DNA of 64,000 bases from Oculina patagonica (Eukaryota), in the NCBI RefSeq assembly GCF_052425735.1, contig NC_135764.1, forward strand, positions 12,090,001-12,154,000. The letters are read 5' to 3'. Position numbers and translations under genes: made by a program. Of this stretch, positions 8,181-61,906 are shown in pieces (position 1 is the first letter of the stretch; each line of letters starts with the position of its first letter). Below the pieces are notes generated by a model. It saw only the letters and a list, made by a program, of their open reading frames with translations. It searched no databases and had not been told where the DNA came from.

Positions 8181-11051
8181 CCACTCTCCCTGCTCCTTAT
8201 TCGGTGTGTGCTGTATATATAGCCTTGCTTTCATTTATATTTATTCAAGTAATACAACTCCGTTAGGTTGACAGCAACGACTGTTGGTTGAAACAATTTG
8301 TCTGTTGTGGGATGCAAAAGAGGCGTCAGAGTGAGTGATAACATTCAATCTTTATTTACCTAATTTCTGTCATTACAGTGGTCATTAACTACAATTGTAC
8401 GGTTAACAAGACAGTTTGAGTAGACACAACGTTTTTCTTATCCACTCCTACTAGCTAAATGCAGAACTTTAACTGCTGAGCTGACCAGTTGGCAAGATCG
8501 ACATCACGTATCAGTGTTCTAGAGCAATTTCCTGCTTGGAATGGGTAAGTTAATCTCAATTCTTTCCCACAAATTAAACTTATGGTGAAACTTTAACTAA
8601 AACTATAACTACATTTGGATTTGGATTTGTCTTCGTGGCATGCCTGGAAATTATCTGGCGCGTTTTATAAAAAACATAGCTAAGCACGTGCTTGTACGTT
8701 TCATGAAGTAATGAGTTACTTCAAAAAGTCTAAGCGATCCGACTTTGTTTTGTTTTTATTTTATGTCATTTTTCGCTATTCACGTAATGCGGCTGCCAGT
8801 AACGTGGGGAAAGAGCCAGAAAAAAAAATATATTATGAAAACGACATTGATTTGCCCAGCTATAATATAACGAATTTAAAGCACCCCTTAAATTTCTGAT
8901 AAAGCAAGGGCAACATAAGCATATAGAAAAAAATGTAAACAGAGAAAACCAACTTACTTTACCATAATCAACTAATCTTTTACTCAGCAATACAAAATTT
9001 AAATATATTTAGGGGCCTATATTAACTAAGGAATAAACTGAAATTCATTCTGCACTTTGAAATCTAAGCTATAGTTCATCGTGATTGCTAGTTTGATTAT
9101 TTTGTTACTTAAGTTGGTTATTTTGAACATACCAGAAACTTCTTTTATCTAAACGTAACTTAGAAGCTCAGTATTTTTTTGTTATCTACTAGTCCTTCAC
9201 CTCATGCAAACTTCACAAAAAGAAAATAGGAAAAAACCTATACGCAACGCTGCAGATTGTTGTTCAGCTAGGCCATTTTGTCAAGAATGGTATTCAAAAT
9301 GCTACAAAGTTCATTACGTTGTAGATTCGCTGCATATCTTAACATATCTAAATCATTTACGATTCTAGTCTACAATAAATGTAACTTCATTCATCATTCA
9401 TTTATTGCTTTCAATCGCATTAATAGCTAGAATAAACCTCGACTAGGAAGACATCTTTGAGTGCATATCATGATGCCATTATTGTCTCTCGCGGTATGGC
9501 AATCCAGGGAACGTTTCCTAAAAACAAATGTGAAGAGTCCATTTAATGCTTTAGATGGAAATCTTTGCAAAAAAAGAATAAAAAACCTTTGTTATTCGCA
9601 TCTTGTTAGAAGTCTGTAAATCTAGGCTTAAGATACTTCATCAACGTGTAACATTGTGGACGGAGATTTCATCATTGCAGTTCGGATGGCAAAATTCGGC
9701 AAGAGATGTATCCATCAGCTAATTTTATTTTAAAATTTATAAGACCTAATTTTCACTGTAGAGCCAGGACGGAAATCAGTGAAGTGGGAGGAACGTTTAC
9801 GGGAAGCGAGAAAAGAGAGGGCGAGAAGCGGTTTTTCCAGGATGGTGGAAACTGGGAGAAAAAGAAAAAATCATAATATTGCATAATATTTTAAAATGAA
9901 CAAGCACAACTAGGCGGGATCCAATTAAGAAGGGGCTGACATGGGGTTTAAAAAGTACGAAGTGGAAAGTTGAGATCCTCCCCACCTCGCCGCCGTCATC
10001 TGAGGAAGCAGCAACATTTTTTAGTTTAGACAATGGAAACTGATTGTGCGGAATTGCTTGTAATACCCTACCTACAACTCGTTATTAAAACTATTACTGT
10101 AATTATCCATTTCGGATCCCTTACACATGAACACCGTTTGCACACAGTGTCAATTGTACCTGTACGCTACGGTCTGATTTACTAATAAAAGCAATTTCCA
10201 GTAATTTTATTGGTCTTCAAAGAACTAAACAAGTACATTTGGAAGCTTTTCCTTACAACTTGTTTTCTCTGGCCTTAGCTGGCAACATGATTTTTGTCAG
10301 TTTTAATTGGCTTGAGAGGAAGAGAGAGAAAAACGAACACAATGAGTCTCAACAAACAACTGTATCTTTTTTGTCTCCCTCTATAGGAAGCGCAATTTAT
10401 TGTTGAAGTACGTACCTTATCTAACTCTGCTTCTGACTTTTTCTAGGATCATCGTGGCTAATTCCAATGCATTGCGGGCCATTTCTCGCGAGTAAACGTC
10501 GTTTGGAATCTGAGGAAAACAAACTTGGTCGGGGTAGCGCATGCGCGTTGAATCGCCCACGCGAGCCTCAAGTTGGCTTGATAACGTGGTCAACTGAGAG
10601 TCGTCCAATGTCAGGGCGTTTTGGACTAAGTTGTGAACATTGGTCTTGTAAGCGTCTACAGAATATTGGGCAGCCTTCAATGCTTTCTCTGCAGCCTGCA
10701 AATCAAACGCCGCTCTCGTTACAAAACCATTCACTTAGAATGAAATGCTTGTATTTCCTACCTTGAAAAACACGATTTTATTCACAGTTCTATTACAGGT
10801 TTGACCAACTGCTACCTGACTGGAAGCTGCACTACGGAGCTACAGGAGACTCGTTGATACTACGTGGTATAACAAACAAGGTTCAAATTTGATAAACCCG
10901 GAATAGAATATCTGTTAATTTCTTTTTTCTAGTACAGTCATACCGGTCTAAGTATTGATTTATTTATGGAAATTTTATTTCATCCCTTGTCTGAATTATA
11001 GTGAAATATTGAAACCGAGTTACACGATGATCTTTTATGTAATATCCTTAC

Positions 11052-14000
11052 CTGGTGGCATTTAAAGCAGGCCCACTCGTAAGACGTTTTCTCAGTACCA
11101 ATGTCGTTTTCAGCAGCCGCCAGGTCGGCCTCAGCTTGTCGAAACCAGCGTCGTGCCTCTCGTGGTTGGGGATTGGTGGTACAGAAGCTTGGGGGAACTT
11201 CCCATGAACGTGTTCTGGACGTTTGTGAACGTGTACTGTGGCCAGTTGACCCATAGTGTTGAACGACGCTGTCTCGGTACTCTCGGCGCTGTGATTTGTA
11301 CCGCCTTACACGCGCTTCCCAGAAACAATAGAAGACACAATAGGACACCCCGTAGTTCTGCAATGTTTCTCTTTCCAGTCGTTCAATTTCATTCTTTAAG
11401 TGTTGAAACACTTGTGTGCAGAACGCCTCGTTTCCTGGGTTCATGTCGGGATGCCACCGTAGAAACAGTCGCTTGATAATTTGTCTTCCTCTGTCTTCCG
11501 GTAGCTTCCAAGCTTCTTCAAGCATTCTTGTAATTTCCTCGAAAATCTTCTGTTTATCCGTCGTGGAGTGAAGCTCTCTTGCATGTCAGACAGTACAACT
11601 TCACCTGATGTTACCTCTTGAAAGCGGTAAAATTTGTACAGGTCGGTAACATGGACAATTTTCGGTTCCTTGTCGTCTCCAATGTTGATCTTGTAGGACT
11701 TCGCAAAGACACTGACACTGTCATTCGGTACTTCTTCGATTATCACGGCGTAGATGTAGGTGGCATCTCCTTCTTGCAGTTCCAAACTTGGATCGTCTAA
11801 CTCGTATCCAACGTATTCTCCGGGAGTTAACACTTCGAATGCCGGATTTAGAAGGTTATGCATTGCAATAGGGATGAAACTACCCGGCGGCGGGATGACC
11901 TCTCCTTCTTCCGCATCATAGGGGTCGTCTTGCCGAATCTTCATTCTATCCAGTAAGGAACATATCTTGCCAGTTTGGCTGAGGAGCATGGCGGGAATGT
12001 ACATAGTTGCTTCTCGCAGCAGTCCTCGACACACCCCCGCAATCACTTGTGTTAACGTTAAGGCTACCGTAGACATGGTTTCTTCCGCGTCCTGGACTGC
12101 GTTAACATATACTCTCCAAATCTCTCCACCGGACTCTGAAACGTTCTCCAAAAAGTATGGTACTTCGAGTTCACTCCCTCGAATCACGATCCCATTATGA
12201 ACCAGATGAGTGACAATTTTACTCATTCCAAGGAAGTCGATACTTTGTAAACTGCTTCTCACAGTAGCGATCACACTTTCGTCTAGCCCACCACCTTGAT
12301 TGGCGTGACGAATGAGTCTGACAATTCCACGGTAGAATTGTTCCGAGTGCAGCTGCTTCTTCAGTGCGCTAGCAGCACCAAAATCAAAACGCTCGGCATT
12401 GTCTTCAGAATCCGCGAATTTTTCTTCGATTACAGAAGACATCATCTGAGGCCGGACAGCTGTGGGAAGAAGCATGATTAAGTCCTGGAAATTTGCACCG
12501 GATTTGCAGCAGACATCGGCCCTCTTTAGACTCACAACAAAAGGAAGGTTGAAGTCCTGAATACGATCCTTGTACTGCGGAGCGTCATTGAAGATAAGCT
12601 CGGTGGCCTTCCTTAACACGACGGGTTGTACATTGTCATCCGGACTGCTACTGAATGGAGATGTGGCTGGTAGGTACAAGGTAGATATATCCCACGTTGC
12701 GGCGGGAGTGTGTTGCAAGGTTTCGAGAAGACCTTTAACCGCTCTCAAAGCACTGTCAACTTCATTTGGATGCAATTGGTTTGCCTTGCACCGTCCGTGT
12801 AACATGTCTAGGACCATGGCATAGTGTGAAGGTGTGACAGAAGGGGAACAGCCCAGGTATTTAAATAGTGTCGTAAACTCACTGAGCTCGGCAGGCATTC
12901 TGTAAAGAAACGGCTTGATCTCAAGGTTCTCGTTCAATTCAATTACTACCTGTTTAGCATAAGCAAAACGTCTACCTTCCTCGACCAAAAGGCAAGGCGT
13001 ATGCTCAAGTCTGTCCTTTCTGAATGTGTTTGATCTGGCTTTTCCTTGAAGAAACCTGTAGATATTCCTCATCACTGACATCCTCGTGTCTTTCTGAAAA
13101 GGCGTCACATCGATCTCCAAATGACAGGATAAATTTTGGCAGTGAAGAGCAACCAGTTCCACAGTTGGCGTTCTAAAAACCTGAAGTTGGGTGAGAATAG
13201 AATCGCAGTAACCACTTTTATTTATACTTTCTGGAAGTTTCATCAGGTACTGATAATTCTCTGGATGTGCCCAATGTGGAAGGATACCTGCAGTCGTCCA
13301 AACAATCTCAGTGTGTTCTGCTACCACAGAGCGTTTGAATGCAATGTATGGAGTATTGTCATCACGTCCTTCACCAAACTGTGGATAGAGGGCTTGAAGT
13401 TCTTGGTTTACAGGATTAGTGGCAACAAAGCGGATATCAGAAACGGCTTGTAGAAGCTCTTCTTCCAAAACATTTTCTCGAAGAAAAAGGTGCTTCACAA
13501 GTTCTTTAGACTTTTCGTCAGTTTTCTTATTCCGTTGTGTTGCGCCCTCACGTGCAACTTCCGTAGCAAACTTCTTGAAAAGATCTGGGGAAACTTCACA
13601 GATAAGCCCGATTTTTTTCAAAAATGACAGCCATTCGTGTGTCTTCAAAGATTCTGGAGGAAACATCTCTTCAGAAAGCATTATTTTGAAAACCTCATTG
13701 TGGGGATCGTAGTAGGAAGATGCTCTCTTTAAAGTCCCATCATTGGAGGTAACAATCGCTGCGTTTCTCAAACAAGCCAACAGCTTCTGTTTGTCGTCAC
13801 TGTCGTCGGTTGATAGTTTTGCTAAAATAGATGCACGGATGTGTGTTAGATGAGCCAGCCTTGCTTCTGCGCTAAAAGTGCTAAAGTATTCCAAAATGAA
13901 ATTACAATACATGTCGACGGCCGAGACACATTTGAATCCCAGAAATTCGAACAACGGAGATAGTCGTGACAAGCCTTCCAAAAACACTACATGTAGTCGA

Positions 14001-17000
14001 AGTCCCAACTCTTCCATTTCTTTTCGTGGAATGCCAATAGGAAGGGCGCACACTCTTTTACTGTATACACTGACGAGTGCACCATTCGTTGCTTGATAAA
14101 AAGGAAGTCTACTTAGTATGTTCTTGTCCCTTTCTTGCAAACCAGCCACATTGTCACTGAAGTATTGCAAAATGGTCTTGCATTCCAAAGTCCGCAATTG
14201 CCCTACAAGCGCTTGTGGGTTTGTCGTCAACTTCTGCTCCAACGATGTCAGTAAAGATGCTGGATACTTAAGGGTCGCAACTAGCAGGCGTGCAAGGCGA
14301 CAGGAATCCAGCGAGGTGTAAACAAAGGGGCCCGTAGTGGACATCACAACATAGTTAACTTCTGCCAGAGTGAGCTTTTTTAAAGCCTGCACAAGTGGCC
14401 GACTTGAAGCATCATGAATTGACAAATCAAGGACAGATCCTGCTAATCGTAAGGGCACTAGGAAGTGTTCCGTTTTCACACCAGAAGTTTTTCCATTGTG
14501 TGATCTTAGCACACAGGTCGTCTCTGTGGCAGGGAGTATGCTCCAGTTTGAAAGAGGTTCGAGTATTGCTTGAATTCTTCTTTTCTTCTCTTCTTCACAT
14601 ACCTTTTCTTCCTGTAATACATTCTTTGTTTCTTCATTCAGGAAAGCCCAAACGCTATATATCCAAGTACGATTTGGCACTGATACATCTGTTGGACACC
14701 ACTGGACGTACCTTTCTCTGCTGACAAACTCGCGTGGCAACGTTCGATGTAAATTATTTGCAAACTCCTTCACTCCAAAACGCTTAAACACAGGTGACTC
14801 TAGACTCGATGCATCGTCAAAGATTTCCTTCCTAATTTCGTCGTGGACAAACAGCTCTTCGCATTGCGGTAGGATTCCGTAATGACGTGAGAGAAACTTA
14901 GGATAAGCACTGCTAAATTGGTGTAAGGAGTTGTCTTGTGTCATAAGTAATGGTAGGCCAGACAGGTTTGCTAAGAAGTGTTCATCATCCTTGCAGTACT
15001 TAAGCACGAGTATGACCCCGTCAGCGTTTTTAAATGGGGTCTCGCTGACATCAACTGACATTGATCCAATGCAGCAAAGGGGATCTTCATTATTGCAGGT
15101 CTTGTAGAACTCCATTACAGCAGAAGGAGACACGCAAGGAGAATTCACACCGGATTTCTGCAATGCTTCAAATACAGATAAAGAGAATTTTACAAGGTTG
15201 AAACCTGTTTGCAGCAAAATTTCTTCAAATGTTGTTTTCTGTTGAATTCGTCTGTTTTCTCTGTCCATCTCGCTTTCAAGATAACGCTTTGGTTCACGGG
15301 AAAAACAATCACTTTTTCCAAGGTTGTTGAAGAATGCTTTGCTTTTTCCTTCGCCTGTTGGAGGAAGCCACGATAGCTGAACTGTAGCGGAGTTACGTTC
15401 TGATGGGTTGCCACGCACAACTGGAAGGAGTCTCGTTCCCTTGTTGTCCATTCCTTGGTACACAGATTTTACCAAGGTCTCCCAGTAAGATTTGTCTAAG
15501 ACAACCAATGGAAATAACTTCTCGTAGTTTGCGAGCTTTTCCACCAAAGCATCTTTACTGTAGTTAACGGTAACTTGTTCAGTGCTGTGTGTGATTGGCA
15601 AATCAAGGTAACTCCTCACCTCATCCAAAAGTGTTAAATAGCATGAGGCTATTACATCCGTCAGCAAAGCGTTGTTCCAGTCACTACGATAGCCACTAGC
15701 TTCGTCTCTCCGCAGATTTCTTCGGCCTTCATGGTCCAGTGCAAAGTGACCATTGATATGGACCGGAAGGTCTGTTTCTAAAGGAAGAGGAAGAAAGCAG
15801 TAAGCTTTTTTCCTCTTAATCTCAGACTCCCCTTGCTTTGATTTTTTCTCCAAAAGACAAGCAACACCACCTCGAGGAAGCATTCCCAGATCGCCTTTGT
15901 TATAAGAATCCACTATGCTTCTTTGCACTTCATTTTCGAAGCCAGCTTGCTGGACAATCATCCACTTTTCGTTGTTTCCAAGGCTGTCTCGTAAGTTCAA
16001 AACATAGGAACACTTTTTCACTTCGATGTTGTTGGGGAACAAGTCGCTTCTTTGATCATCCGTCTTTCCGATCTGTTTGACGTAGGTGGCAAACTCTTTT
16101 CTTTTGGCTGCGTCCTCCTCTGACATTTCTGCCTCGACAAAATAAGAGTTGACCACTTTTCCACTTTCTTCGTCGATGTCACACAAAGTGATTTTTCTTA
16201 CGTTATTCACAAAAAGTAGAACTTCAAAGAGCTCTCCTTTCAAGGCTTTCATCATGTCATCCAACGCTGCCAGTGTTACTGGTGATTCAGAAATCTTGGA
16301 GTGATCTGCCATCGCTTGGGTTCTCAACGGCAAACGAAACATTGTTGAGTTATGTATGGGGAACGCATCTTCGTTGTAGCAAGAAAAAACATGTGGAAAC
16401 ATGCTTTTCAATCGCGTTGATTCTTTAAACATTCTTCCTGGTTCTGACGCAGTTGCACCGGGCACGTACTTGTGGTGTGGATCCAACACACACAAAACAT
16501 CTCCAATCTCTTCACCACTCGAGACAAATGTTGGAACATCAGTCAAATGATACACCGCATTGAAGCCGACACCATACTGGCCAGTCTTGTTTGGATCATC
16601 TCCCTTACTGCCTTCACCGAGGTTCTGTATTCCCACAATATCAGCTTTAGTGAAGGGTTTGTTGTTGTACACGCACAATGCAGGGCCCTGGAGTGACTTC
16701 CACGAGTCTCCAAACACTTTCTCGTCTGGATGCTGTCGAGGGTCTTTAATAAAAGAAATCTCTGTTGCTTGAGCATCATCTGCATTCTGAAGAAGTTCTT
16801 TCAAGATTTCTTTTTCACATGGGTAAGCTGTTAAAATACGTTTCAAACGATTGGTGAGTTTTTCTTTTTGACCAAAGGGAATACCAGACGAAAAATGCTG
16901 CAATGCTTTTTCACGGCGTGTTTTGACCCCTAGTTGGCCACTCGTTTTATGAGGAATCATGTCATTCACAAAATGAACCCCAATTTCGTCAGGCATCCAC

Positions 17001-20000
17001 GGGCAGTCTCTCATACAAAGCTCACCAACAGATCGCATTATTCCTTGCGAATCAGGAAGATAAAATAATTCCTGATTTTCCTGAAGTTTGGCGACGTCGT
17101 CCTCTGGAACTATCAGACAGTTACCGAGTTGAACTGCCACATTAACTGCGACCTGAAGATTCTTCTCATCGAGCTCTGTGTCACCAAACGTCTCCTTTAT
17201 TTTCTTCAAGCAAGTGATGTAATCTCTCTCTTCAAAAGCATGTTTTACACCGGCTCTTTTCATTAAATCTTCAAATGATCTGGCTAAATCATGTGGGAGC
17301 TGATAAAGATATGGAGAGCAATCAACGTCCAACCTGAAAGCCACTTGTTCTGTATAAACAAATTCTTCCCCAGAGAGAATGAACTTCTTTCCACAAAACA
17401 TCCCTTTCACGTCCCCCATCTCCATTTCTTTGTTTTCAATGGCTTTTTGAAGATATTTGTAAGCTGCCAAGCACACTTTGTTTAGCTGTCGGATTTCATC
17501 TATACCAAGACTGTTAGCAGCGTTTATCGACGAGGCAACATCAAGTTGGGTTCTAACATGGTCTGGAGTGGCCTTCTTTTTGTCTAAATGTAGGAACTTT
17601 TGAACAGCTGTTGGGATAAATTGATCTACCACTGGCTCAGTGCAACAGACCAGGTACTTTTCGCTTTCTAAAAAGGACTCCATAGGTGACAGCAATACTC
17701 TTTGGGTATCGTTTTGTACCTTATCTCCTTTCCAGGGAAGAGGAAACTTCTTTGGTTTCCGAAGCACTGGAAGAAATTTGGCTTGTAAGAATTTGTTATG
17801 GATATCATCGGAAAGAGAGCTTCCATCCTCATTCTTAAGCTTTCTTTCTAGGCGATCCACCAATGCTTGTACGCGCATTAAAGCTGCTTCACTACTACAT
17901 CTGTTTAACATGCTGATACTCTGTGCCCTTTCTGCAAGTTCAGGCCACGGAAGATCATCTGTCAACATCCCAAGTTGTTCAAGTTTGGCAAGTCGCATGC
18001 TGTTCAAGAACGTTTCCTCCGTACCAAAAGGGAACCTTTTATCCTCAGGGCTAAACAGTGACGCCGCGGTTTTGTATGGGTTGATTTGTTGGCCAGGACT
18101 CTTCAGCTCTTGACCGTCTGGGGAGGCTGGAATGCAATCATGTACTTTTATTAGGTCGTCGAATTTTCCAGTTTTGTCGTCTAGGACGTACAATACCAAT
18201 TCATTCCTCAGATGGGATGGTACCGAAGCAACATTTGGAAAGAATAGCTCGCGGAAGAACCTTTCCTTGTCGTAGCATTTAGCCTGGATTGCTGCTCCCA
18301 GATCATATTCTACAAAAGACTGGTACACATCAGCTGGCATATCAATGATGACTCCACTCCCTTTGTTCAACAACTGGAAAACCTCAAACGACATGTCTCC
18401 TACTTGTGACTCGTGCCGAAAGTTTGGCTCCAAAAAGACCATTTGAGAGATGTCCACCCATCGATTTCCATCTGAAAAGAGAGCATAGCCTCCACAGGAA
18501 AGTTGTTGGTAAAACGAGCGAGAAAGAGGCTCACAGTGAAGCTGTACTTCGCAAGCTTTGGGCCACAGTGAATGAAACTGGTATGTGACAGGTGCCGACT
18601 TCTTTACGTCCTCAAGTAGGTCCAGATATGCTGCACAGATAGAGTCTTGCATAAGAATATTGTTCCATTTTACTTCAAAGCAGTCTTTGTCGTCAGCTGT
18701 TTTCTCCTTCAAACCTCGTCTGCTGGCGGCTACTGCAAATGCACCATTTACATGCACTGGAAAACCACTGTAGATTGGAAGCGGGAGGTAGCAGAAGAGG
18801 CTTCCCTTGTGATGTGGCTCTTTCGTTGTGATCTGATCGACAACAGGTACAGGCAGGAGCTTTTCACTTTCGTCAGACAGCAACTGAACAGCAACTCCAG
18901 CTGATGGAAGTAGAGACTTGTCGTCTTTAGCAAATTGCATTGCGTTTCCTTTGCCCATGGAAGATGCGACAAGCCAACTTTCAGATTCATCCTGAAGGTG
19001 ACCATTGTCCTTAAGGAACGATCTTCCGCATTGTGTAATGGTGCTCTTTATGCTGACTGTTAGTGCAGAGCTGAGCAGAACAGTATTAGAGCTGGTGGAA
19101 TCTCCTAGACGCTTAGCTACTTCAGATGATGCTCGTAGAACATTGCACTGTTTTACTAAGTACTGGTCTTCAGTGCTTAGGTTCTTAACAGCTGGTGAAA
19201 GTGTGACTGGAACTGTCAATTCTCTTAAGATTCCACCTTGATGCAATGATTTGCTGACCTCAAACAACAGAATTGGTTGTTGGGAAGAAGCTGATTCTCT
19301 CGGCAAATGAAACACACTTATGCGGCGGACATTTTGTGTGAAGAGTAGCAAGGTTTTAGCACCACGAGTGAAAAGATCCAAAAGTTCCTCCACTTGTTTG
19401 TTGTCGTAATGAAGTTGCTTGATTTCGCTTTTAATAGCTTGCTCTTTAGTTCGTAAAGGAAAGCGAAAGAGTGTTCCATGGTACGAGTTGTCCTCTTTTT
19501 CCAGGCGAAGATCACAATCAAATATGCCGTTGAATGGTTTGAACTGGTTGCTAAAATTTCTCAGTCTCTTCGTGTTCTTGTTGATGTCTATCTTCATTCC
19601 TGGTTTGTTCTTGTTCCTGATTGCTTTTCCCAGATAGAAAGTGTTGGGGTCAAAAATCACAAAGTAATTTGTACTCACGAACATTGGAACATCCGTCAGG
19701 TTGTATACTGCATTGAAGCCGAGACCAAACTTTCCAATTTTCTCAGTGTCGCCTTCTTTTGTTGCACCGTTCAGTTTTGTTATGTTTGCAAAATCCTCGT
19801 CTCGAAACTCTGCATCGTTGTAAACCCACAGTGCAGGACCCTGGCAGTGTCTCATTTCTTCATCAATCAGACAGGTCATGGCATCTTCGTTTGTTCTTTC
19901 ATCGTAAAGAAATCTAATTTCAGTAGCTCCGGCGTCGTCTGCGTTTTGAACAAGCTCTTTCGGTACTGCAAATCCATCGGTGTAATCTTCCAAAAGTCTG

Positions 20001-25100: not shown

Positions 25101-25589
25101 AGCTCCTAATATATGGGAGAAATATTGTTCACATTTGGAAGAAATAAAATCATAACAGAAATATAGAGTAACGATAGACTAGTATCAATGAAAGGACTTT
25201 TTAGTTAGGTGAGAATTTGTCTTTGACACAATCGCCATCCGGACATTCAACTTTGAGTTCTTCTTGGTTTTATAGATATGATAAGCATAAAGTATGTTCT
25301 GCTGAAGACTGTGGTGCACAATATAGCTGTCTTTTGTCAAGGTCTTTACCTTGACTATCTGTCCGTCATCTGGATACTGATCTAGTATGGTCCTCAGCTG
25401 TTGGATAAGCGATGGCTGAATCAAATCAAACCCATCGTCATCATTATCCACTAGCACGAAAAAACAAAACAAAAAAATATCAGACTATTTGCGCCAATTT
25501 CAGTACCTATTCAATAGCTGGAGCCTATCGCTTCTGACAATGACTGATCCGAAAAAACTTACATGAAAAGACTGGTGGAAGCAAGCAAG

Positions 25590-25637
25590 AATGAACGAAG
25601 GAAAGAAAAAAGAAAGAACGAACGAACGAACGAACGA

Positions 25638-25668
<31 letters not shown>

Positions 25669-27404: not shown

Positions 27405-27442
<38 letters not shown>

Positions 27443-29189: not shown

Positions 29190-29197
29190 TATATATA
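29190..29197 (-). promoter_or_regulatory. Putative TATA box ~400 bp upstream of the ATG exon
   Basis: TATATATA in a block conserved between the diverged 5' regions (also 62629-62636), next to a CRE-like cgtcacgt. Confidence 0.35.
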
Positions 29198-29261
29198 GTC
29201 TATTTAAAACCTCGATGAGCCGTCACGTTGCCGGTACGTCCTAGAAACACTTCGTAAAAAG

Positions 29262-42901: not shown

Positions 42902-43055
42902 AGCCCAATTTCGATATTTTAAAATTCAGTCAAAAACAATAGACATCACTACGAGGCTCCGGGGAATAAACCCCACAAACTCTATAGTTTAGTCCCGGAG
43001 CCTCGTCCTGAGGTCTATTGTTTTAGGCTGAATTTTAATATATCGAAATTGGGCT
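42902..43055. mobile_element. 154-bp fold-back MITE with AT TSD, unit 2 only
   Basis: Nearly the whole element is an inverted repeat (agcccaatttcgatat...atatcgaaattgggct); empty site gcaatttcc at ~10191-10199. Confidence 0.88.
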
Positions 43056-43067
43056 ATTTCCAGTAAT

Positions 43068-43073
43068 TTTATT
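43068..43073 (-). terminator. Candidate polyadenylation signal AATAAA (another at 43258-43263; left copy 10206-10211 and 10396-10401)
   Basis: tttatt on the + strand, downstream of the stop codon. Confidence 0.35.
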
Positions 43074-43278
43074 GGTCTTCAAAGAACTAAACAAGTACAT
43101 TTGGAAGCTTTCCCTTACAACTTGTTTTCTCTGGCCTTAGCTGGCAACATGATTTTTGTCAGTTTTAATTGGCTGGAGAGGAAGAGAGAGAAAAACGAAC
43201 ACAATGAGTCTCAACAAACAACTGTATCTTTTTTGTCTCCCTCTATAGGAAGCGCAATTTATTGTTGAAGTACGTACC

Positions 43279-43557
43279 TTATCTAACTCTGCTTCTGACT
43301 TTTTCTAGGATCATCGTGGCTAATTCCAATGCATTGCGGGCCATTTCTCGCGAGTAAACGTCGTTTGGAATCTGAGGAAAACAAACTTGGTCGGGGTAGC
43401 GCATGCGCGTTGAATCGCCCACGCGAGCCTCAAGTTGGCTTGATAACGTGGTCAACTGAGAGTCGTCCAATGTCAGGGCGTTTTGGACTAAGTTGTGAAC
43501 ATTGGTCTTGTAAGCGTCTACAGAATATTGGGCAGCCTTCAATGCTTTCTCTGCAGC
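43279..43557 (-). CDS. SACS: Terminal exon 8, remainder of HEPN domain
   Basis: Acceptor tttgcAG|GCT GCA GAG AAA continues [11 protein letters not shown]; ends RYPD...VRSRVR-stop. Confidence 0.9.
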   Translation of the reverse strand, partial: AAEKALKAAQYSVDAYKTNVHNLVQNALTLDDSQLTTLSSQLEARVGDSTRMRYPDQVCFPQIPNDVYSREMARNALELATMILEKVRSRVR

Positions 43558-52500: not shown

Positions 52501-55500
52501 AAAGTGTTGGGGTCAAAAATCACAAAGTAATTTGTACTCACGAACATTGGAACATCCGTCAGGTTGTATACTGCATTGAAGCCGAGACCAAACTTTCCAA
52601 TTTTCTCAGTGTCGCCTTCTTTTGTTGCACCGTTCAGTTTTGTTATGTTTGCAAAATCCTCGTCTCGAAACTCTGCATCGTTGTAAACCCACAGTGCAGG
52701 ACCCTGGCAGTGTCTCATTTCTTCATCAATCAGACAGGTCATGGCATCTTCGTTTGTTCTTTCATCGTAAAGAAATCTAATTTCAGTAGCTCCGGCGTCG
52801 TCTGCGTTTTGAACAAGCTCTTTCGGTACTGCAAATCCATCGGTGTAATCTTCCAAAAGTCTGCTAAGTCTGCGAGTTAGTTTTTCTTCTTGCCCAAATT
52901 CCTCTCCTATTTTTTCCTCTCCTATTTCCAGCTCGTCAGGATCCAGCATTCGATTCATAAGCGTTGGAACAAGCAAAAGTTCAGCTGTGCTGTTTGGAAT
53001 GTTTGGATGTACGTACAAAAAATCCATTTCTTCATCACGATTGCTTCTTTCCAACCACTCGTGCTCACAGTACATGCAATCTTCAACTAGTGCAAGCTTG
53101 AGATAAGCATCTCCTTCTACGTGAGTGGGAACCAGAACCTTTTCCTGAAGCGTCGAAGGCAACTGTTCACCAACCTTTGGCTTAACCTCATTCAGGATGT
53201 CCACAGATAACTGCAGGTCTTTCTTCACTTCTGTAGTCGGAAACTGAGAGCGGCTGTCATACTTTTGCTTTATCAAATGAAGAACTTGGAGCAGGATTGC
53301 GTCATCGCATTTTTCCAGCAAGCCAAGACTGGCAAAAAACGCAGAGAAATGTAGCACCTCTGAAGGGAGGGCGCAGATGTATGGTGATAGGTCAATAGGA
53401 GGCTTCTCAGATAGCAGAACGCTAGGTGAAGAAAATCCATCTCCACTCCAGATCCAGGCTGGATTGTCAAGGTCCCGTAAAGCCATCATTACGTCGGCGT
53501 GATCTGCACGGCTTAAAAATGCATAGATTTCTTTAACTATCAGGATGTAACGCGGCTTTTCATCTGGGTTGTAACAACTGACTACGTTGTTCAGGTGCTG
53601 TGTGACATCAAATACAGTTGGCTCTGTGTTCCAGGAAAAATAATGGGCTAACTGACTGGATGGCTCTGTTTTAACGACTGGCTTTACGGATCCAACGAGA
53701 TTTACCAGTTGATTGCTCTTGACTTCTGAGGGTTTGTGGAAATTGGACTCTTTGCTTGTTTCTCCCAAAAACGTAAGACTTTGTGGAAAATCACTGGGTT
53801 TTCTTCTTATCCTGGGTACCCATGAGATGTCTTGAAGAAGTAATCCCAGCTTTGTTCCACAAGCGGTCTCTTGAAGTTTTGAAGGATTTCGTGTCAAGTA
53901 TTCCATGATTGCTTCTGACTTTATTTCCGCTGCTGAAAGGCTTGAAATGCCACTGACCGCTTTCGCACTTTGGTAAAGGTCTTGCCCAGTGATCCTTTCC
54001 TCGCCTTTCATTCCGAGATCTTCCAAAATCACAAGGGCTGCAGGATCGTTGTATTGCTCTACAGCAGGAAAAACATCTTCATCAGTGAAAATTCTCCTCA
54101 ACGAGTCTCCTCTGGGGTCGAATATTTCAATTGGCCGAACTCGTCTATTTTTGGTTGAGACAAATGGCAAAGCTTTTAATTTCTCTTTAAATCTCCCATT
54201 GGCACCAGCGTAAACTTTATAGCGCTCCATCACAAAGGCCATAAGTCTGTCAATCTCTTCAACAGTATAACAACCCTCTTCTACACCGGGGAATATTTCT
54301 TCGAGTAAAAATTCAGGCGGCGTCAGGATCCTGATGTCCAGTAAAACTGCCAAATGCTTCGAGTCGTCTTCCTTAACGTCAATGAGATCTCGGCGAGGAG
54401 TCACTGGGAACGACTGTTCGGGTGCGGCACAAAGATCCTCTTTCTTCGAAACAAAAGCCTTGGATAGAGTCTCAAACAAAGGAAGGCAATGGAGAACCTT
54501 CTTCTCTTCTGGTTCCAGTGATGAAGCTTTAGCAACAAACTTCCTCAAAGAGCGCTTCCCCTCGTCTGGTACTTTTTGCATTCCAGCCGTCATCACGGGC
54601 AGGGAAGCCGCCAAAGCTCTTAAAACACCTTGAGTTGACGGTGGTTGGACGAACGTACTCGTGACAGCGGGATGGAGGCTTATGAAATTTGGATATTCCT
54701 GTAATACTGTCACACCGAGCTCTTTCAAAACGCCAGTGAGGGTGTCATCAAGGCAATCGCCATGAAGGCTTCTTACTACTATTTTAGATGGCTGAGTGAG
54801 TCTTGCCAAGGTTACCGAGGCTTGGGACATGTCGATTGGAAGCAGTGGAAGGTTCTCAAGCATTTTAAGCTCATTTTCTGTGGCAAAGTTCTTGCCAAGG
54901 TAGTCCCACACGAGCCCCAGCCAGTCCTTTGGAGGATGATTTTCGACTCCAGGATACCACAGAACGTTTTCTCCCACTGACCACTCAGGAGGCAGTGATT
55001 TTGAAAGAAGTGTACCTACGTTGTCTTTGCAGAGATGTCGTAGCTGCGTGCATCCTATGTAAAATGAACAAAACTGTTTTGGATTATTTCTCTTAACAAA
55101 ATTTATGTAATGGCCTTTTTGAGTCAGGAAGACTTTACAGATACTCTCTGTCCTTCGAGATGCTTTGCCATGGAAAAAAAACATATCATCTGTAGTAACA
55201 TGCATTCAAGAACAATAAATTTCCGAAGTGTACTACTAAATAGCTAAGCTACTGCGAAGATAGCCGTACTTTTAAGATCTCCATGATACAACATACTACT
55301 ATAGCTTGGCGGTGCAGAGTTTTGCTGCAAATACAGGACGTCGTATTCCTACCAACAACAAGTTTTGTTAAATTCGATCTTCTACTCTAGATCTGAAAGT
55401 GAATGTTTATTCAATTCAAACCTCTGTATTAATTATATAATTATATGGAATTAATTTTGGTTGCTTCGTAATAAAGTCTAGAACATGCTTCGTACCTTGG

Positions 55501-58500
55501 TCAGCAGCTGCTTGCAGGCTTCTTAAGAGGTTCTCGTCAATGCTCTGGTCCAGAAATCGATCCTGTAGACACGGAAGAAGTTCACGCGGGTGCTCAGGCG
55601 AACTGATGTAAATAGCTTCACCAGAGTTGGAAAACGAAGTGAACAATCCATTGGAAACGGGCAATAGCTCTAATCCTAGGAGTTCTGAAAACTTGCCGTC
55701 TTTGAGGACAAATTTTAGAAGCAGCAACTTCTCTGAGTGACTGATGCTTCTGTAACACGAAGGCGTTTCCTTGAGTACTTTCCGTGCTAGTAGGGGCGTG
55801 ATTTCTGTACTCAAGTTTGTGTACATGCCCAACGCTTTTAACACGTGGCCGGGCAAAGAGGCAACATTTTGATCAGCCTTGAGGAAAACTCGCTCAAGCA
55901 GCTCTTTAGGATCATCCTCTTGGACTCTGTTAAAGATCACATCTTCCACGTTTAGCCAGTTTCCTCCGAGGGCTGGAGTGTAAACAACGTTTTCGGTACA
56001 CAGCAGCTCAAACAAGGGGTTCTGCAGTCTTTTCCACTTTTGGTCAATACTGTTGATGTCTGGCCACGCTCTAATTGACAAAGAACATTACAGTAAAGTA
56101 ATCAGTAAAAACAAACCTTTCACGGTCAACGAGGGAATCTGAGAATTAATTAACATGCATATTCTTCTTGTTTGCCTCTGTATCTTTAAGGACCTCTTCT
56201 GTGGGCGTCCAATTCTGTTATCCTTGACAGTCCGGTAAACTGTTCGCGAAATTAACCTCATAAAAAGGACGGTATTTGTTTGGAATATCATCAGGACATA
56301 CAGATCAACGGACATGAAAATTTAGACATTTTAATCTTACTTGTAAATTGCCTCTGCTTGTACACTATAACACTTCTCGTTAATGGCTTCCATCAGCATC
56401 GTGGCATACGCGCGGGGGATTGCTTCTTCTAGCAGACACCGGTTCCACAACAAGGACTTGTCAGTCAGCTGTCGGCCTTCCTTCTCAGCCAGATCTTCTT
56501 GCTCAGCATTCGGTGTCTTAATGTAACGTCTGTTCTGGTTCAATGCAAAGAAGCCGTTAACATGCACTGGCAAACCTGTCAAGCTCGTCTTTTGCATGGG
56601 CAATGGTAGGAAACAAAACACGTGTCCTCGAATATCAGGCGTTTGATTTCCAGAGCTATCTGGTAATGCCATGGCGACACCAACTAAAGGTAGATAGCTC
56701 AGGTCTCCATCTGTAGCCAGGCTTTCAAATTGTGACGAGACCTTTCCACCACAAAAATAGTTTGTGACAAGGAATGAATGCCTTTCGGTACTGCTTCCTT
56801 CCCCTTCGGAGAAATTCAGTGTCTCAATCGTGATTGGATACGTTACTTTAACAGGTTGTGGCATTAGCTGGCCATGGCCGGTCTTGATCTCGTTCCGAAA
56901 CTCCCGTCTCTTTTCTCGAACTAACTGGAGGCTATCATCGCTTATTCGTACTTGAAACGTTTTCCTGGCTTCACTATTTGACTCTTCCCGGACGTAAAGC
57001 TCTATGGATTCGAGATACTGGAGAAATAGAAGAATCAAGTGTGCATCGGCCATGAAACTCTCAAACAGCATGTTCACCTTTTCTGCAGAGTACAGCGTCT
57101 GTGACAGCTTTGAGGGGGTGTTTCGCAGGGGGAAGCGAAACAACGTCCCATTGTAAGATCCTTCAGAGAAAACATTATCTGTACAGTCGAATATTCCTTT
57201 GTAAGGGAGAAACTGGTCCGGTATACTGTCCATGGCTGCACGGTCTTCTTTCATTCTCCATCTGTGTCCCGTTCGTCGGTCTCTTCCGTCGCCAAAGTAC
57301 TCCTCGTGCGGATCAATCACGCCAATTTGTGAACTGCTCACGATGCTCGGGAGATCTGAAATGAACAGAGCATGTAATGAGCAAAATTGTTGCTTCGGCG
57401 ATGAAAGAATGGTTCTTGGCAGTTTTGTTACGTTTCGGCCACATTTCGCATGGTCGTATTGGATGGGAAGTTGTTTTGGATAATGGAAACAAGATTAAGA
57501 TCCTACGTTACTCTTCTCGCTTTAATTTGATATACAAGATAGAAAACGGTCACCTAATGTATACAATTTTGAGTTTAAAAGGCCGCGGGCATGGAACTGG
57601 CGCGGCTGAGGTTCTTAGAAAGTCAATTGACACTGCATCCGACACGCCAGACGATCCACCACCAGGATTTTGCTATACGATATCTTGAAGTTGTTTTGAT
57701 TTTTTGCAATTCGTCTTATTTGAAACGTTATAAGGGTTAATAGGTGGTTGTTGCCGTCACTTCTGCTAGTTTACCGGAGTTCATTTTAAGGTAGGCTGAA
57801 GTCGCATTTTATGCTCATATTTTCCGACATTCTCTAAGTCGCGTTGTCTTTCACTTCAAGAACCTTATCTTTGGGCCCGGGGGGGGGGGGGGGGGGGGGC
57901 CGCTGGATAGGGTATGGTTTTTTACTACTCCCATCCTGAACAGGGTATATAATTTCAAGCTCCTCTGTCTTAAACAGGGCCTGAACCTGTCCTAGACAGG
58001 GTATGGCTGCAAGACTGTCCTCAAGTATTTGTATTGTTTTCGCTTTCGCTTCAATGAAAAGCATTATTTTATTTGCTGGGATCGGTGTTCGCAGTTCAAT
58101 GCGTCGAACATCGCGTCTGGGACGTAATCACAATAAAGCGTAAGTTATTGTTGATGTTGTCCTTTGTCCTAAATAGGGTCTTAAAATAGGGCGTGTTGTC
58201 TTACACAGGGTAGGTATTTTAAGTTTTCACTGTCCTAAACAAGGTTAGGGTTTCAAACCTCCAGCGGTACCCCTATACCTAAACAAAGGTCAAGTACCCT
58301 CCCCCCCGCGGGTCTTTGGGCAAACGCGACTTCACGAAAGTCTATCATTGATTCTTCATTCAATTACTCTCTATTCCTGATTGACCTAAAATAAAAGGGG
58401 CGATGAGACTATTTGAAACAATTTACCCATAACAATCGGAGACTAACCTGTAACATGAAATACAGACTTGAAGCCAAGGCCAAAACGGCCGACTTTCATT

Positions 58501-61500
58501 GGGTCTTTGACTTTAATACTGTCGCACAACATTCGTATGCCTTTCCAGTCGTCTTTAGTAAACTGAGCGTCGTTGTAGGCATAAAGTGCTGGGCCCTGTT
58601 TGACAAGCGTACAAACATTATTAAAAATACACAACAGAGCATAAATTCAAGCATTTGTTCTGTTATTAGTAGTGCGACAAAGTACCAATAGGATTCAAAT
58701 ACTGTGCAGAAAACTGCGAGTGTTTTACCACTCACTTCGTTTAAAAAATCTACCTGAAACTGGGCGAGGCCTTTGCTATGTAGTTTTTCTGTTCCATAGC
58801 TGTGTTTGTCGTGAAGTAATTTCACTTTGCTTGCCCCTGCATCTTCGGCATTTTGAATGAGCTCCTAATATATGGGAGAAATATTGTTCACTTTTAGAAG
58901 AAATAAAATCATTACAGAAATATAGAGTAACGATAGACTTTTTAGTTGGGTGAGAATTTGTCTTTGACACAATCGCCATCCGGACATGCAACTTGAGTTC
59001 TTCTTAGTTTTATAGATAGGGTAAGCATAAAGTTTGTTCTGCTGAAGACTGTGGTGCACAATCTAGCGGTCTTTTTTCACCGTCTTTACCTTCAGTATCT
59101 GCCCATCGTCTGGATACTGATCTAGGATGGTCCTCAGCTGTTGGATAAGCGATGGCTGAATCAAATCAAACCCATCGTCATCATTATCCGCTAGCACGAA
59201 AAAACAAAAAAAAATTATCAGCTAGACTTACTGCGCCCATTTTCAGTATCTAATCAGTAGCTGCTATAGCTACTGACAATGACTGATCCGAAAAACTTAC
59301 ATGTAAAGACAGGTGGAAGTAAGCAAGAATGCACGAAGGAAAGAAAGAAGAAAGATAGGGAGAGGAAGAGAAGGAAGCAGGTAAGTAAGAAGGTAAACAT
59401 CCAGGAAGGAGGGCAGGCAGGCGGGCAGGCAGGCAGGTAGGAGGCAGGCAGGTAAGTAGGAGGTAGAGAGGTAGGAAGATAAATATGCAGGCATGCAGTA
59501 AGGCAGGTGTAAAGCAGGATTGACTAACAGGCAGGTAAGGTAGGCAAGAACGTAGTTCAAAATGTGAAAAGGAAAGGTGGGTCAATAGGCAGGCAGGTAG
59601 GTAGGTAAGTATTGGTGTAAAACAGTATTGCAATGAGAGCTTGTGTTTACAGAAGAGTGTAACCTTAACTTCGAGATAATTTTCACGAGTTTGATCTCTC
59701 TTACATAAAAACAATTGTGGCAGTGTGCGTTAGTGCGTACCGACTGTCATTCACTTCATTAAATTGTTTCTCAATTACCTTATTGTATTTTCCATGAAAT
59801 CCATCCTTTCTTCATCAGTAAAACTACTTAAACTGAGCAAAATCCAAGCTTAGAATGATTTCTCAGTACTCTGGAAGCCTTTTCCGAGNNNNNNNNNNNN
59901 NNNNNNNNNNNNNNNNNNNNNNNNNNNNNNNNNNNNNNNNNNNNNNNNNNNNNNNNNNNNNNNNNNNNNNNNNNNNNNNNNNNNNNNNNNNNNNNNNNNN
60001 NNNNNNNNNNNNNNNNNNNNNNNNNNNNNNNNNNNNNNNNNNNNNNNNNNNNNNNNNNNNNNNNNNNNNNNNNNNNNNNNNNNNNNNNNNNNNNNNNNNN
60101 NNNNNNNNNNNNNNNNNNNNNNNNNNNNNNNNNNNNNNNNNNNNNNNNNNNNNNNNNNNNNNNNNNNNNNNNNNNNNNNNNNNNNNNNNNNNNNNNNNNN
60201 NNNNNNNNNNNNNNNNNNNNNNNNNNNNNNNNNNNNNNNNNNNNNNNNNNNNNNNNNNNNNNNNNNNNNNNNNNNNNNNNNNNNNNNNNNNNNNNNNNNN
60301 NNNNNNNNNNNNNNNNNNNNNNNNNNNNNNNNNNNNNNNNNNNNNNNNNNNNNNNNNNNNNNNNNNNNNNNNNNNNNNNNNNNNNNNNNNNNNNNNNNNN
60401 NNNNNNNNNNNNNNNNNNNNNNNNNNNNNNNNNGCAGGAAGGTAGGGAGGTAGGAAGGAAAATATGCAGGCAGGCAGGTAGGCAGGTGTAAAAAAGTATT
60501 GACAGACAGGCAGGTAAGGTAGGCAAGAACGTAGTTCAATAGGTAAAAAGGTAAGGAGGCAGGTAGGCAGGTAGGTAGGCAGGTAGTTAGGTAGGTAGAT
60601 AGGAAGGAAGGTAGGAGGCAGGAAAGAAGGTAAGTAGGCAGGCAGGTAGGTAGTAAGGTAGGTAGGCAGGTAGGTAGGTTCCTTGGAAGGTAGGTAGGTA
60701 GACAGGTGTGAAGGTATGGAGGCAGGTAGGCAAGCCGAAAGGCAGGCAGTAAAGTAGAAAGGTAAATATGAGGCAGGCAGGTAGGTGGTAGGTCGGTGAG
60801 TAGGGAGGTAGGAAGGTAAATATGCAGGCAGGCATGCAAGCAGGTAGGTAGGCAGGCGAAAGTTAGGCTTGAAAGACAGACAGGCAGGTAAGCTAGGCAA
60901 GAACGTATTTGGAGATAGGTAAAAAGGTTAGAAAGTGGATATGTAGGTGGGCAGGCAGGCAGGCTTGATNNNNNNNNNNNNNNNNNNNNNNNNNNNNNNN
61001 NNNNNNNNNNNNNNNNNNNNNNNNNNNNNNNNNNNNNNNNNNNNNNNNNNNNNNNNNNNNNNNNNNNNNNNNNNNNNNNNNNNNNNNNNNNNNNNNNNNN
61101 NNNNNNNNNNNNNNNNNNNNNNNNNNNNNNNNNNCAGATAGGAATGTAGGTAAGTGATAGGTCGAATCAGTCAGTCAGTCAGTCAGTCAGTTAGTCAGTT
61201 AGTCAGTTAGTTAGTTAGTTAGTTAGTTAGTTAATTAGGTAGGTACAGAGGCAGGTAGGAAAGGCAGAAAGGGAGTCAGGTTAAGTTAGGTAGGCAGGTA
61301 GGTAGGCAGGCAGGTAGGCAGGCAGCTAGATAGGCAGGTAGGTAGGTAAGTAGGTAGGTAGGTAGGTACCTAGGTAGGTAGGTAGGTAGGTAGGTAGTAG
61401 GTTGGAAGGTAGGAGGAAAGTAGGTAGGTAGGTAGAAAGGCAGGCGGGCAGGCGGGCAGGCAGGTTGGTAGGTATAGGTAGGTAGGTAGGTAGGTAGGTA

Positions 61501-61906
61501 GGTAGGTAGGTAGGTAGGTAGGCAAGTAGATAGGTGTGTAGGTAGGCAGGCACTGCCTAGCCCCTTTAATTGGTTAGTACTAACATACACCCCCCCCTCT
61601 TTCTCTACCCCCCCCCCCCACCTCCCATTCCAGGTCTGTAATCTCCAAGTTAAGAGTATGTTTTTTTATGCCAATACTAGTCCACTAAGAATATGATTGA
61701 ATAAACATTCGTCTGCTTGTCTGTATGAATTTTTTGTTATTTTGTTTTGAGACAAGTTTGGGATTAAAATAACCGCTTGCACGGTCGACTATACACACAT
61801 GTGGGAGACGTGGGTGGGGGGGGGGGATCACAAAGAGTCGACGATCAAATAAAGTTGACTTGCAGAAAAAGCTAATATACTAGACACTCATTTGATACTC
61901 ACCCAT
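43279..61906 (-). CDS. SACS: Sacsin-like protein, intact copy (~4457 aa, 8 coding exons): three sacsin repeat regions with Hsp90-like ATPase motifs, J-domain, HEPN
   Basis: Exons read by hand, all GT..AG and phase-compatible: 61903-61906, 59090-59190, 58754-58864, 58448-58595, 56341-57355, 55496-56070, 43914-55054, 43279-43557. Total 13374 nt = 4457 aa + stop. Motifs: [93 protein letters not shown]. Confidence 0.92.
43914..55054 (-). CDS. SACS: Giant exon 7 (11,141 nt) of intact sacsin-like gene: end of repeat 1, repeats 2-3, J-domain, start of HEPN
   Basis: Lies within the 3787-aa ORF 43842-55205. Acceptor ttttacatAG|GA TGC ACG CAG; donor CAC CAG|gtaagg. Confidence 0.92.
55496..56070 (-). 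CDS. SACS: Sacsin-like exon 6
   Basis: Phase-2 acceptor (AA|A GCG TGG CCA) and phase-1 donor (CAA G|gtacg); inside ORF 55416-56081. Confidence 0.88.
56341..57355 (-). CDS. SACS: Sacsin-like exon 5 (repeat 1: [25 protein letters not shown])
   Basis: Phase-1 acceptor G|AT CTC CCG; donor TAC AA|gtaag; overlaps ORF 56337-57341. Confidence 0.9.
57496..58410. mobile_element. ~0.9-kb insertion in intron 4 of unit 2, containing a nested CCCGGG-terminal MITE (57876-58312)
   Basis: Absent at ~24638-24642 of unit 1. The nested MITE has a perfect 8-bp TSD tctttggg (57868-57875/58313-58320). Confidence 0.85.
58448..58595 (-). CDS. SACS: Sacsin-like exon 4 (GPALYAYND...[14 protein letters not shown])
   Basis: 148-nt exon bounded by AG/GT; carries the Hsp90-like glycine motif. 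Confidence 0.88.
58754..58864 (-). CDS. SACS: Sacsin-like exon 3 ([11 protein letters not shown]...AQFQ)
   Basis: 111-nt phase 0/0 exon containing the ExxxNxxDA motif. Confidence 0.88.
59090..59190 (-). CDS. SACS: Sacsin-like exon 2 ([33 protein letters not shown])
   Basis: 101-nt exon; gctAG acceptor and AAG|gtaaag donor; resembles the start of a sacsin repeat. Confidence 0.85.
59330..61550. repeat. (AGGT/AGGC)n microsatellite tract in intron 1 of unit 2, with gaps
   Basis: Direct reading. N runs at 59889-60433 and 60970-61134. Confidence 0.95.
61903..61906 (-). CDS. SACS: Putative first coding exon segment (ATG G)
   Basis: aaaATGG|gtgagt here and aaaATGA|gtgagt in the other copy (28791-28794). 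The phase-1 donor exactly complements exon 2 in both copies (M-A-D-N / M-M-D-N). Confidence 0.65.

Follow-up and report, generated by a model that had tools for sequence, protein, structure and literature searches.

Coral genes of the sacsin type have drawn attention as candidates in the response to heat. In Acropora, sacsin is upregulated by heat and has been under long-term balancing selection, with documented haplogroups more than 5% apart (bioRxiv 10.1101/867754; PMC8626496), and the sacsin-like type represented by Amillepora11972 has been reported to be heat-upregulated in both Acropora and Pocillopora (10.1101/867754; PMC8626496). Sacsin is also listed among the families that have diversified in corals (PMC6208414), and sacsin paralogs with HEPN and Death domains have been discussed as conflict systems (PMC3710099). 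A Tiamat-like type XI-A class from aquatic chordates combines three ATPases with a J domain and a HEPN domain without the ubiquitin-like (UBL) and XPC-binding (XPCB) domains (bioRxiv 10.64898/2026.09.30.754977). Here, we describe a 64,000-nt stretch of the coral Oculina patagonica (chromosome C7:12,090,001-12,154,000; assembly of 529 Mb), referred to as the window throughout, which holds two sacsin-like genes, gene 1 and gene 2, and is probably the young end of a genuine tandem array formed by sacsin-like genes without a UBL domain. The expansion of sacsin-type genes in corals is already known, and the locus is no new kind of system.

Results

Self-comparison of the window by BLAST revealed two head-to-tail sacsin-like units on the minus strand with a period of ~32.86 kb, such that positions 1-25617 recur overall at 31925-59355. 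An initial annotation, made from the letters alone, had proposed two such genes between 10417 and 61906. Both genes were borne out by the repeat itself, by three Pfam SACS matches and a HEPN match, and by PDB matches to the sacsin repeat, J domain, and HEPN domain; the coordinates proved exact, 10417 being the last base of the gene 1 stop codon and 61906 the A of the gene 2 ATG. A genome-wide search with the SACS profile, in which each of the 52 candidates was scored, yielded 10 sacsin loci, seven of them clustered within 400 kb of C7. Loci A, B, and C occupy the plus strand at 11.75-11.88 Mb, and the minus strand carries D, E, gene 1, and gene 2 at 12.03-12.15 Mb; the 400-kb map combines search coordinates with 30 kb stitched from the loci. 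Outside C7, one locus lies on C1 and two on C13, one of the latter pair being deep-branching (34% identity) and the other carrying many stops. The further copy that had been expected to the left exists: L018 1037-4695 contains the 5′ exons of the left-hand copy E, after which comes upstream sequence with homology to 28435-31924. Specifically, the left flank runs without a gap from the 5′ exons of E through its microsatellite intron, exon 1, and upstream region straight into the window, and one contig therefore suffices to prove the tandem arrangement, however the youngest pair is to be judged. As had also been argued at the outset, the array is thus real even if that pair represents haplotypes, given the ungapped left flank and the six other C7 loci. 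To the right of gene 2 there is only ~2.6 kb of intergenic-like sequence, and the array ends.

In a protein tree with 38 coral homologs, the O. patagonica copies fell into species-specific groups (gene 2 and E, with D nearby; A and B; C and H), and four copies from one 1-Mb contig of another coral formed a clade of their own, which indicates that tandem expansion is recurrent among corals. These lineage-specific tandem expansions, together with the 10 loci, support the copy expansion proposed initially. Paralog D (P0002) is the hypothetical protein ACROYT_G025008, 75% identical to the window gene, and a 100% identical product is encoded at C7:12.03 Mb. The stops found inside copies D and E were dismissed as lesions of the giant exons, as they lie outside these exons, which are open.

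Gene 2 is intact and transcribed. Its coding sequence of 13,374 nt encodes 4,457 aa with zero internal stops, and its coding exons, including a giant exon of 11,141 nt, are in frame when joined (Table 1). Gene models were built by tblastn with P0002 as guide, enumeration of GT-AG sites, open frame, and RNA joints; the RNA evidence consists of assembled Logan contigs of public runs, which show transcription and from which the expression level is not readable. Joints 57355>58448, 58594>58753, and 58863>59089, all with GT..AG ends, were present in contigs from three RNA-type runs of three studies, while joint 59190>61903 (exon 2 to exon 1, also GT..AG) was found in runs X1 and X6 and crosses both gene 2 gaps. 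None of the gene 2 splice joints is present in the DNA run. Since the latter RNA joint spans the gaps and the exons are in frame, the gaps interrupt an intron and the coding sequence is continuous. A second junction form in X1, with two other letters, matches the ATGA|TG junction common to gene 1 and the left-hand copy; therefore, at least one further member of the array is transcribed. Exon 1 is laid out as a short upstream open reading frame (uORF), an in-frame TGA four codons 5′ of the ATG, the ATG plus a G, and a GTGAGT donor. The uORF, of four codons (ATG...ATG TAA/TGA), opens exon 1 at 61916-61947 in gene 2 and 28804-28835 in gene 1 (both minus strand); kept in both copies, it is a possible translational control element.

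The gene 2 protein comprises three GHKL ATPase repeats, a J domain, and a HEPN domain. Pfam placed two matches to PF25794 (SACS) in the giant open reading frame (ORF) and one in exon 5, and the N-boxes (QNAxDA) at residues 39, 1400, and 2453 are each followed by a GxxGxG-type box, all intact. The sacsin repeat matched PDB 5v45 (E = 1e-41) and the J domain matched PDB 1iur (E = 1.5e-18), with the HPD motif at residue 4232. The HEPN domain (PF05168), with an RYP motif at residue 4418, begins where the giant exon ends, the last exon supplying the remainder, and paralog D aligned over 127 residues with the human sacsin HEPN domain in PDB 3o10 (E = 1e-19). A UBL N terminus is excluded, because the RNA-supported exon 1 carries the in-frame TGA described above; the first N-box already stands at residue 39. 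As for an XPC-binding domain, residues 3400-4200 gave no Pfam match at E ≤ 1 save a chance-level COMM_HN. On the strength of its sequence motifs, namely the ATPase boxes, the J-domain HPD, and the sacsin-type HEPN, the protein would seem to be a chaperone-like, Hsp70-recruiting ATPase, for which this motif set argues.

Gene 1, by comparison, is a newborn pseudogene or null copy, with the same exon structure and canonical splice sites throughout. Relative to gene 2, it carries two lesions and no others: a nonsense change at codon 1302 (gene 2 numbering), with translation of gene 1 stopping at codon 1303, and a 1-bp deletion outside any long homopolymer, from which the frame is lost from ~codon 4193 on translation. 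Pseudogenisation, which had been suspected from the letters, therefore takes the form of one nonsense change and one frameshift. In the same assembly, seven further giant exons of the family stay open over 2,840-3,333 codons, which shows that random frame errors in it are rare, and the gene 1 lesions are probably real. An exact-product look-up of the truncated gene 1 ORF in other assemblies found nothing.

The two units are not uniformly similar. Beyond the intergenic block (Table 1), self-comparison gave 99.07% identity for 10191-24640 vs 43053-57496, down to 90% for 24638-25617 vs 58411-59355, and 84-93% for 28511-31707 vs 61562-63754; the intergenic block itself differs from its left-hand counterpart by six indels of 45-1,371 bp, and none of its ORFs of ≥90 aa has a Pfam match. 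The 14.4-kb block holds 135 differing alignment columns with a strongly uneven distribution: the first 13 kb accounts for 25 of them (0.19%), the last 1.4 kb for the other 110. A near-identical block of ~25 kb (99.8%) extends from inside the proximal copy of an upstream element, R (see below), through the intergenic DNA to intron 5, and at the breakpoint zone the divergence between gene 1 and gene 2 rises from 0.19% to about 8-10%. Among the exons, the giant exon is 99.84% identical between the two genes (4 synonymous and 9 non-synonymous differences; synonymous divergence [dS] 0.0018), compared with 94% for exon 2 and 92.5% for exon 5, and the units are about 90% identical over the stretch of exons 2-5. 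In exon 5, dS is 0.218 between gene 1 and gene 2 and 0.055 between gene 2 and the left-hand copy E. By these sequence comparisons, the 5′ exons of gene 2 are of different ancestry, closest to the left-hand neighbour, and the ~25-kb block bears the signature of a very recent duplication or a long-tract conversion over older units.

We estimated omega (dN/dS) by the pairwise Nei-Gojobori method for whole genes and in 200-codon windows. Among paralogs, it was 0.25-0.31 overall and 0.14-0.26 in exon 5, and along the gene it varied from 0.07 in the ATPase cores to 0.68 at residues ~3450-3750. No positive selection was seen among the paralogs at 200-codon resolution, omega never exceeding 1. The diverged N-terminal part noted initially is real as local divergence; diversifying selection of the N-terminal repeat was rejected, as exon 5 is under purifying selection (gene 1 vs gene 2 omega 0.19) and gene 2 matches the left-hand copy, and diversifying dN/dS among paralogs was not found in any window. 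Along the older paralogs, dS varies 10-fold, which indicates conversion mosaics. In DNA run X2, positions 57542, 57569, 57581, and 56544-56815 are represented only by contigs with the letters of the left-hand copy or of gene 1, which suggests either that the borders of conversion tracts differ between individuals or that there are local assembly errors.

E, gene 1, and gene 2 each have two copies of the R element, ~1 kb long, upstream, and a fragment of it lies in intron 1 of gene 2 (59612-59885). A genome search gave no match outside this locus, and since R is confined to it, R is not a dispersed transposon. Apart from the copies in Table 1, the distal I-type is found at 214-1167 (upstream of the left-hand copy) and at L019 1-934 (to the right of the window, upstream of gene 2), and the proximal X-type at 62694-63754 (upstream of gene 2). 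The exon 1 RNA contig extends upstream into R-matching sequence and ends at a conserved AAG|GTAA donor, and thus a non-coding exon 0 exists, with its conserved donor at ~32807 in the I-type copy upstream of gene 1. Each R of ~950 bp carries four TTCNNNGAA palindromes resembling the gamma-activated site (GAS), at homologous positions in both types, TTCCCGGAA included (32217, 32818, 32910, and 32957 in the I-type; 30786, 31397, 31470, and 31518 in the X-type). Two of them lie ~100-150 bp upstream of the exon 0 donor, and the window as a whole holds 49 GAS-like sites vs 26.8 expected. In addition, one perfect three-unit heat-shock element (HSE) per R is kept in all three copies of each type (32268-32280 in the I-type; 31144-31156 in the X-type and 63215-63227 in its gene 2 copy), and perfect HSEs number 3 independent sites per unit vs ~0.6 expected.

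All five N runs of the window sit inside (TAGG)n/(AGGT)n microsatellite arrays located by TRF between the 45-nt ATG exon and exon 2; the gene 1 gaps are intronic by homology to gene 2 only. Such a microsatellite, ~1-2.5 kb long, fills intron 1 of every young member of the array (25867-28078 and 60549-61550 in the window; L018 5000-6820) and is the cause of the five assembly gaps. ORFs at 26272-28343 and 59828-60900 were rejected as coding exons, as the repeat is stop-free on the minus strand and includes N runs; the spurious microsatellite ORFs span 190-345 aa.

Several further features were observed in the neighbouring copies. Within copy E, the first 1,342 codons of the giant exon are repeated in two additional, truncated copies (C7:12070363-12079880; L009 and L010). 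These start at the acceptor site and recur every 4,759 bp, with 98.2% identity between them and 91-92% to the full exon, and each is open for ~1,460-1,500 codons; they might serve as alternative terminal exons, or else be partial duplicates that are dead. The annotation of paralog D includes a HEPN_DZIP3 domain at the N terminus (P0002 residues 46-193; C7:12.03-12.045 Mb). Neither the window nor its flanks encode the N-terminal 508 residues of D, which include this domain and further sequence; no other giant protein has this N terminus, and the HEPN_DZIP3-sacsin fusion may be a gene-model merge. Another coral has, on its 1-Mb contig, a HEPN_DZIP3 ORF (L020 30592-31007) ~9.6 kb beyond the end of a same-strand sacsin-like gene. 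A TRADD-N-like region was suspected in paralog D and dropped, as Pfam gave no support.

Dispersed repeats are also present in the window. A tRNA-Arg(CCG)-derived short interspersed nuclear element (SINE) of ~300 bp lies at 4875-5180 on the plus strand (Rfam tRNA, 30.1 bits; ARAGORN). It is found in unit 1 and not at the matching place of unit 2, so its insertion postdates the separation of the units. The genome contains more than 3,300 candidates of this family; the 40 that were scored are 96-99% identical, and the family looks young and probably active. A high-copy dispersed repeat of ~420 bp in intron 4 of gene 2 (57891-58312) occurs on most chromosomes at 89-96% identity, and an insertion at 62016-62400 that resembles a miniature inverted-repeat transposable element, specific to the upstream region of gene 2, is a second high-copy dispersed repeat. 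The DNA-run contigs of these two repeats have depths from thousands to tens of thousands.

Table 1. Features of the sacsin-like units in the window (positions from the first letter of the 64,000-nt stretch)
Feature	Position	Strand	Basis or remark
Gene 1	10417-28794	minus	same 8-exon structure; exon-by-exon BLAST vs gene 2
Gene 1 exons 1-4	28791-28794, 25350-25450, 24995-25105, 24681-24828	minus	
Gene 1 exons 5-8	23482-24499, 22633-23207, 11052-22191, 10417-10695	minus	
Gene 1 counterpart of 45-nt exon 1	28791-28835	minus	
Gene 1 premature TAA	20240-20242	minus	TAT (Tyr)>TAA; base 20240 vs gene 2 base 53103
Gene 1 1-bp deletion	11571/11572	minus	vs G at 44434 in gene 2; codon 4192, before J domain
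Gene 1 intron 1	25451-28790	minus	TRF; homology of exons 1 and 2 to gene 2
Gene 1 intron 1 gaps	26504-26705, 27742-27987, 28079-28289		in (TAGG)n 25867-26488, 27241-27738, 27990-28078
Proximal X-type R upstream of gene 1	30699-31664	minus	82% identical to I-type
Distal I-type R upstream of gene 1	32138-33091	minus	self-BLAST, RNA joint 61938>59779, motif search
Intergenic block I2	31925-42901	none	97.5-99.6% identical to 1-10195 (I1)
Gene 2, ATG to stop	43279-61906	minus	intact sacsin-like gene, 8 coding exons
Gene 2 coding exons 1-4	61903-61906, 59090-59190, 58754-58864, 58448-58595	minus	
Gene 2 coding exons 5-8	56341-57355, 55496-56070, 43914-55054, 43279-43557	minus	
Breakpoint zone (intron 5 and start of exon 5)	56135-56600	none	difference map, three-way comparison with left-hand copy
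Gene 2 intron 1	59191-61902	minus	TRF; RNA joint 59190>61903
Gene 2 intron 1 gaps	59889-60433, 60970-61134		(AGGT)n/(TAGG)n arrays 60549-60856, 61287-61550
Gene 2 exon 1, 45 nt	61903-61947	minus	three-copy alignment, motif search, frame check, RNA joints

Discussion

The reading that we favor as the likely one places the window at the young end of a genuine tandem array. Each unit of ~33 kb consists of two locus-specific R modules, which supply exon 0, then a 45-nt ATG exon and the microsatellite intron 1; five exons of small or medium size follow, then the giant exon of 11.1 kb and a final exon in which the HEPN domain is completed. The array would evolve by unequal crossing-over and gene conversion, with copies dying occasionally, i.e., by birth-and-death plus concerted evolution under moderate purifying selection. 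Given three intact Bergerat N-boxes and G-boxes, the J-domain HPD, and a sacsin-type HEPN, the intact copies may act as ATP-driven, Hsp70-recruiting co-chaperones. They would serve the stress response of the coral, and the R module, with its conserved STAT-type palindromes and one HSE, might make them inducible. From the literature, a stress or immune role is plausible: published work supports a stress role in corals (10.1101/867754; PMC8626496; PMC6208414), whereas the arguments for an immune one are comparative (PMC3710099; 10.64898/2026.09.30.754977), and its one local hint is the HEPN_DZIP3 module beside, or possibly fused with, some paralogs. The interpretation given in the initial annotation is, overall, partly supported. 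Some observations weigh against the reading that we favor. In its motif, the HEPN domain is similar to the human form, which is possibly non-catalytic. The placement of gene 2 exons 5-8 comes from homology and GT-AG rules rather than from RNA joints. For the copy number of the 99.8% pair, the basis is assembly order and, as weak evidence, contig k-mer depths, which are not copy numbers. Finally, of the HSE/GAS modules described initially, the sites are present; the perfect HSEs of both R types, non-coding, lie ~230 and ~530 bp downstream of the RNA-supported exon 0 donor and are intronic for that transcript.

The status of the two window units depends on the assembly. The two 99.8% units could be haplotypes of one locus that the assembler placed in tandem, which we consider unlikely. 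On that reading, 28290-59888 would be a haplotig with microsatellites at its borders, gene 2 would have gene 1 as a null allele, and the divergence of the 5′ exons would be that of ancient allelic haplogroups, as in Acropora sacsin. The giant-exon dS of 0.0018 is very low, and typical coral heterozygosity is above it; the contig breaks all fall in (TAGG)n arrays, and no separate haplotig of the gene 2 5′ region was found elsewhere in the assembly. Haplogroups of coral sacsin more than 5% apart are, in addition, on record (10.1101/867754; PMC8626496). However, contigs of DNA run X2 that are specific to gene 2 (40.7-48.8), to the left-hand copy (42.2), or to the gene 2 promoter (40.3) have equal depth, and those common to two or three copies have depths of ~74 and ~107, whereas an allele would give half the flank depth unless the animal is homozygous. 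The irregular gap sizes (165-545) also suggest read-based rather than Hi-C joins, and the units differ by seven indels, including the young tRNA-Arg SINE in unit 1 only, and by 3-9% upstream divergence. Were the pair allelic after all, the locus count would fall by one and the pseudogene would become a null allele, nothing more, and the array of six other C7 loci would stand. That both genes are intact and the gene 1 lesions are consensus errors of the assembly is more doubtful still and, in our view, very improbable: the 1-bp deletion does lie in a short GA-rich context, and the region adjoins hard-to-assemble repeats, but the other lesion is a base substitution, which is seldom an assembly error, and the seven open giant exons of the family show that frame errors are uncommon here.

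The function of the family can also be read differently. By analogy with prokaryotic defence, its members might be primarily innate-immune (antiviral) effectors, with GHKL clamps related to the prokaryotic defence protein Tiamat, the HEPN domain as an RNase effector, induction via the STAT-like sites, and some members coupled to DZIP3-type HEPN modules. This seems to us an improbable account of the family, even though it agrees with the clustered, conserved GAS-like sites of the R module, with tandem expansion accompanied by a pseudogene, and with the HEPN_DZIP3 domain annotated on paralog D and encoded after a sacsin-like gene in another coral, and even though the literature has considered sacsin paralogs with HEPN and Death domains as conflict systems (PMC3710099). 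Against it, omega is nowhere above 1 at 200-codon resolution, every ATPase motif and the HPD of the J domain have been retained, as is the case in chaperone-type sacsin, the HEPN domain is without an obvious Rx4-6H histidine, and the fusion with DZIP3-HEPN is seen in no other giant protein and not in the window genes. A broader and more speculative proposal, which we regard as slightly less probable again, is that the array comprises innate-immune and stress effectors descended from Tiamat-type GHKL defence ATPases and switched on via the STAT-type palindromes and HSE of the R module, with copy number and 5′ exon identity varying among individuals through ongoing gene conversion. If this were true, the "ancient balanced haplogroups" reported at coral sacsin and the paralog exchange of Oculina would be two faces of one diversity-generating process.

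Sacsin is among the few named heat-tolerance candidate loci in reef corals, and O. patagonica is a classical bleaching model. For such a candidate gene, a C7 array of seven members that includes a newborn pseudogene and chimeric copies and has an upstream module of its own means that paralogs can be mistaken for alleles when diversity at sacsin is scanned with short reads. Exons 2-5, which differ by 2-8%, provide paralog-specific markers for expression studies, and R is a compact regulatory element for testing HSF or STAT control.

Compared with vertebrate sacsin (SACS; the ARSACS protein), the window genes share three Hsp90-like GHKL repeats (PF25794; PDB 5v44-47), the J domain with its HPD, a C-terminal HEPN domain, and one giant exon that encodes most of the protein. 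They differ in that vertebrate SACS has an N-terminal UBL and an XPC-binding domain, neither of which was detected in the window genes, and is single-copy, whereas the coral gene is multi-copy and tandemly arrayed; the deep-branching sacsin locus on C13 is separate. The architecture of the Tiamat-like type XI-A class, i.e., three ATPases, J, and HEPN without UBL or XPCB, is that of the window gene, which is without a nuclease domain, and the class has no known defence phenotype. A possible coral counterpart is Amillepora11972 of Acropora (Fuller et al., 10.1101/867754; PMC8626496), a sacsin-like heat-shock co-chaperone candidate that shows, as here, very high local divergence within the gene. 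It is reported as single-copy with two ancient allelic haplogroups, whereas the divergent versions in Oculina are most likely neighbouring paralogs that exchange sequence. With birth-and-death immune and stress families, the Oculina array shares tandem clusters, graded paralog ages (dS from 0.002 to saturation), lineage-specific clades, partial duplicates, and a pseudogene; unlike such families, it combines strong signs of concerted evolution (gene conversion mosaics) with no detected positive selection.

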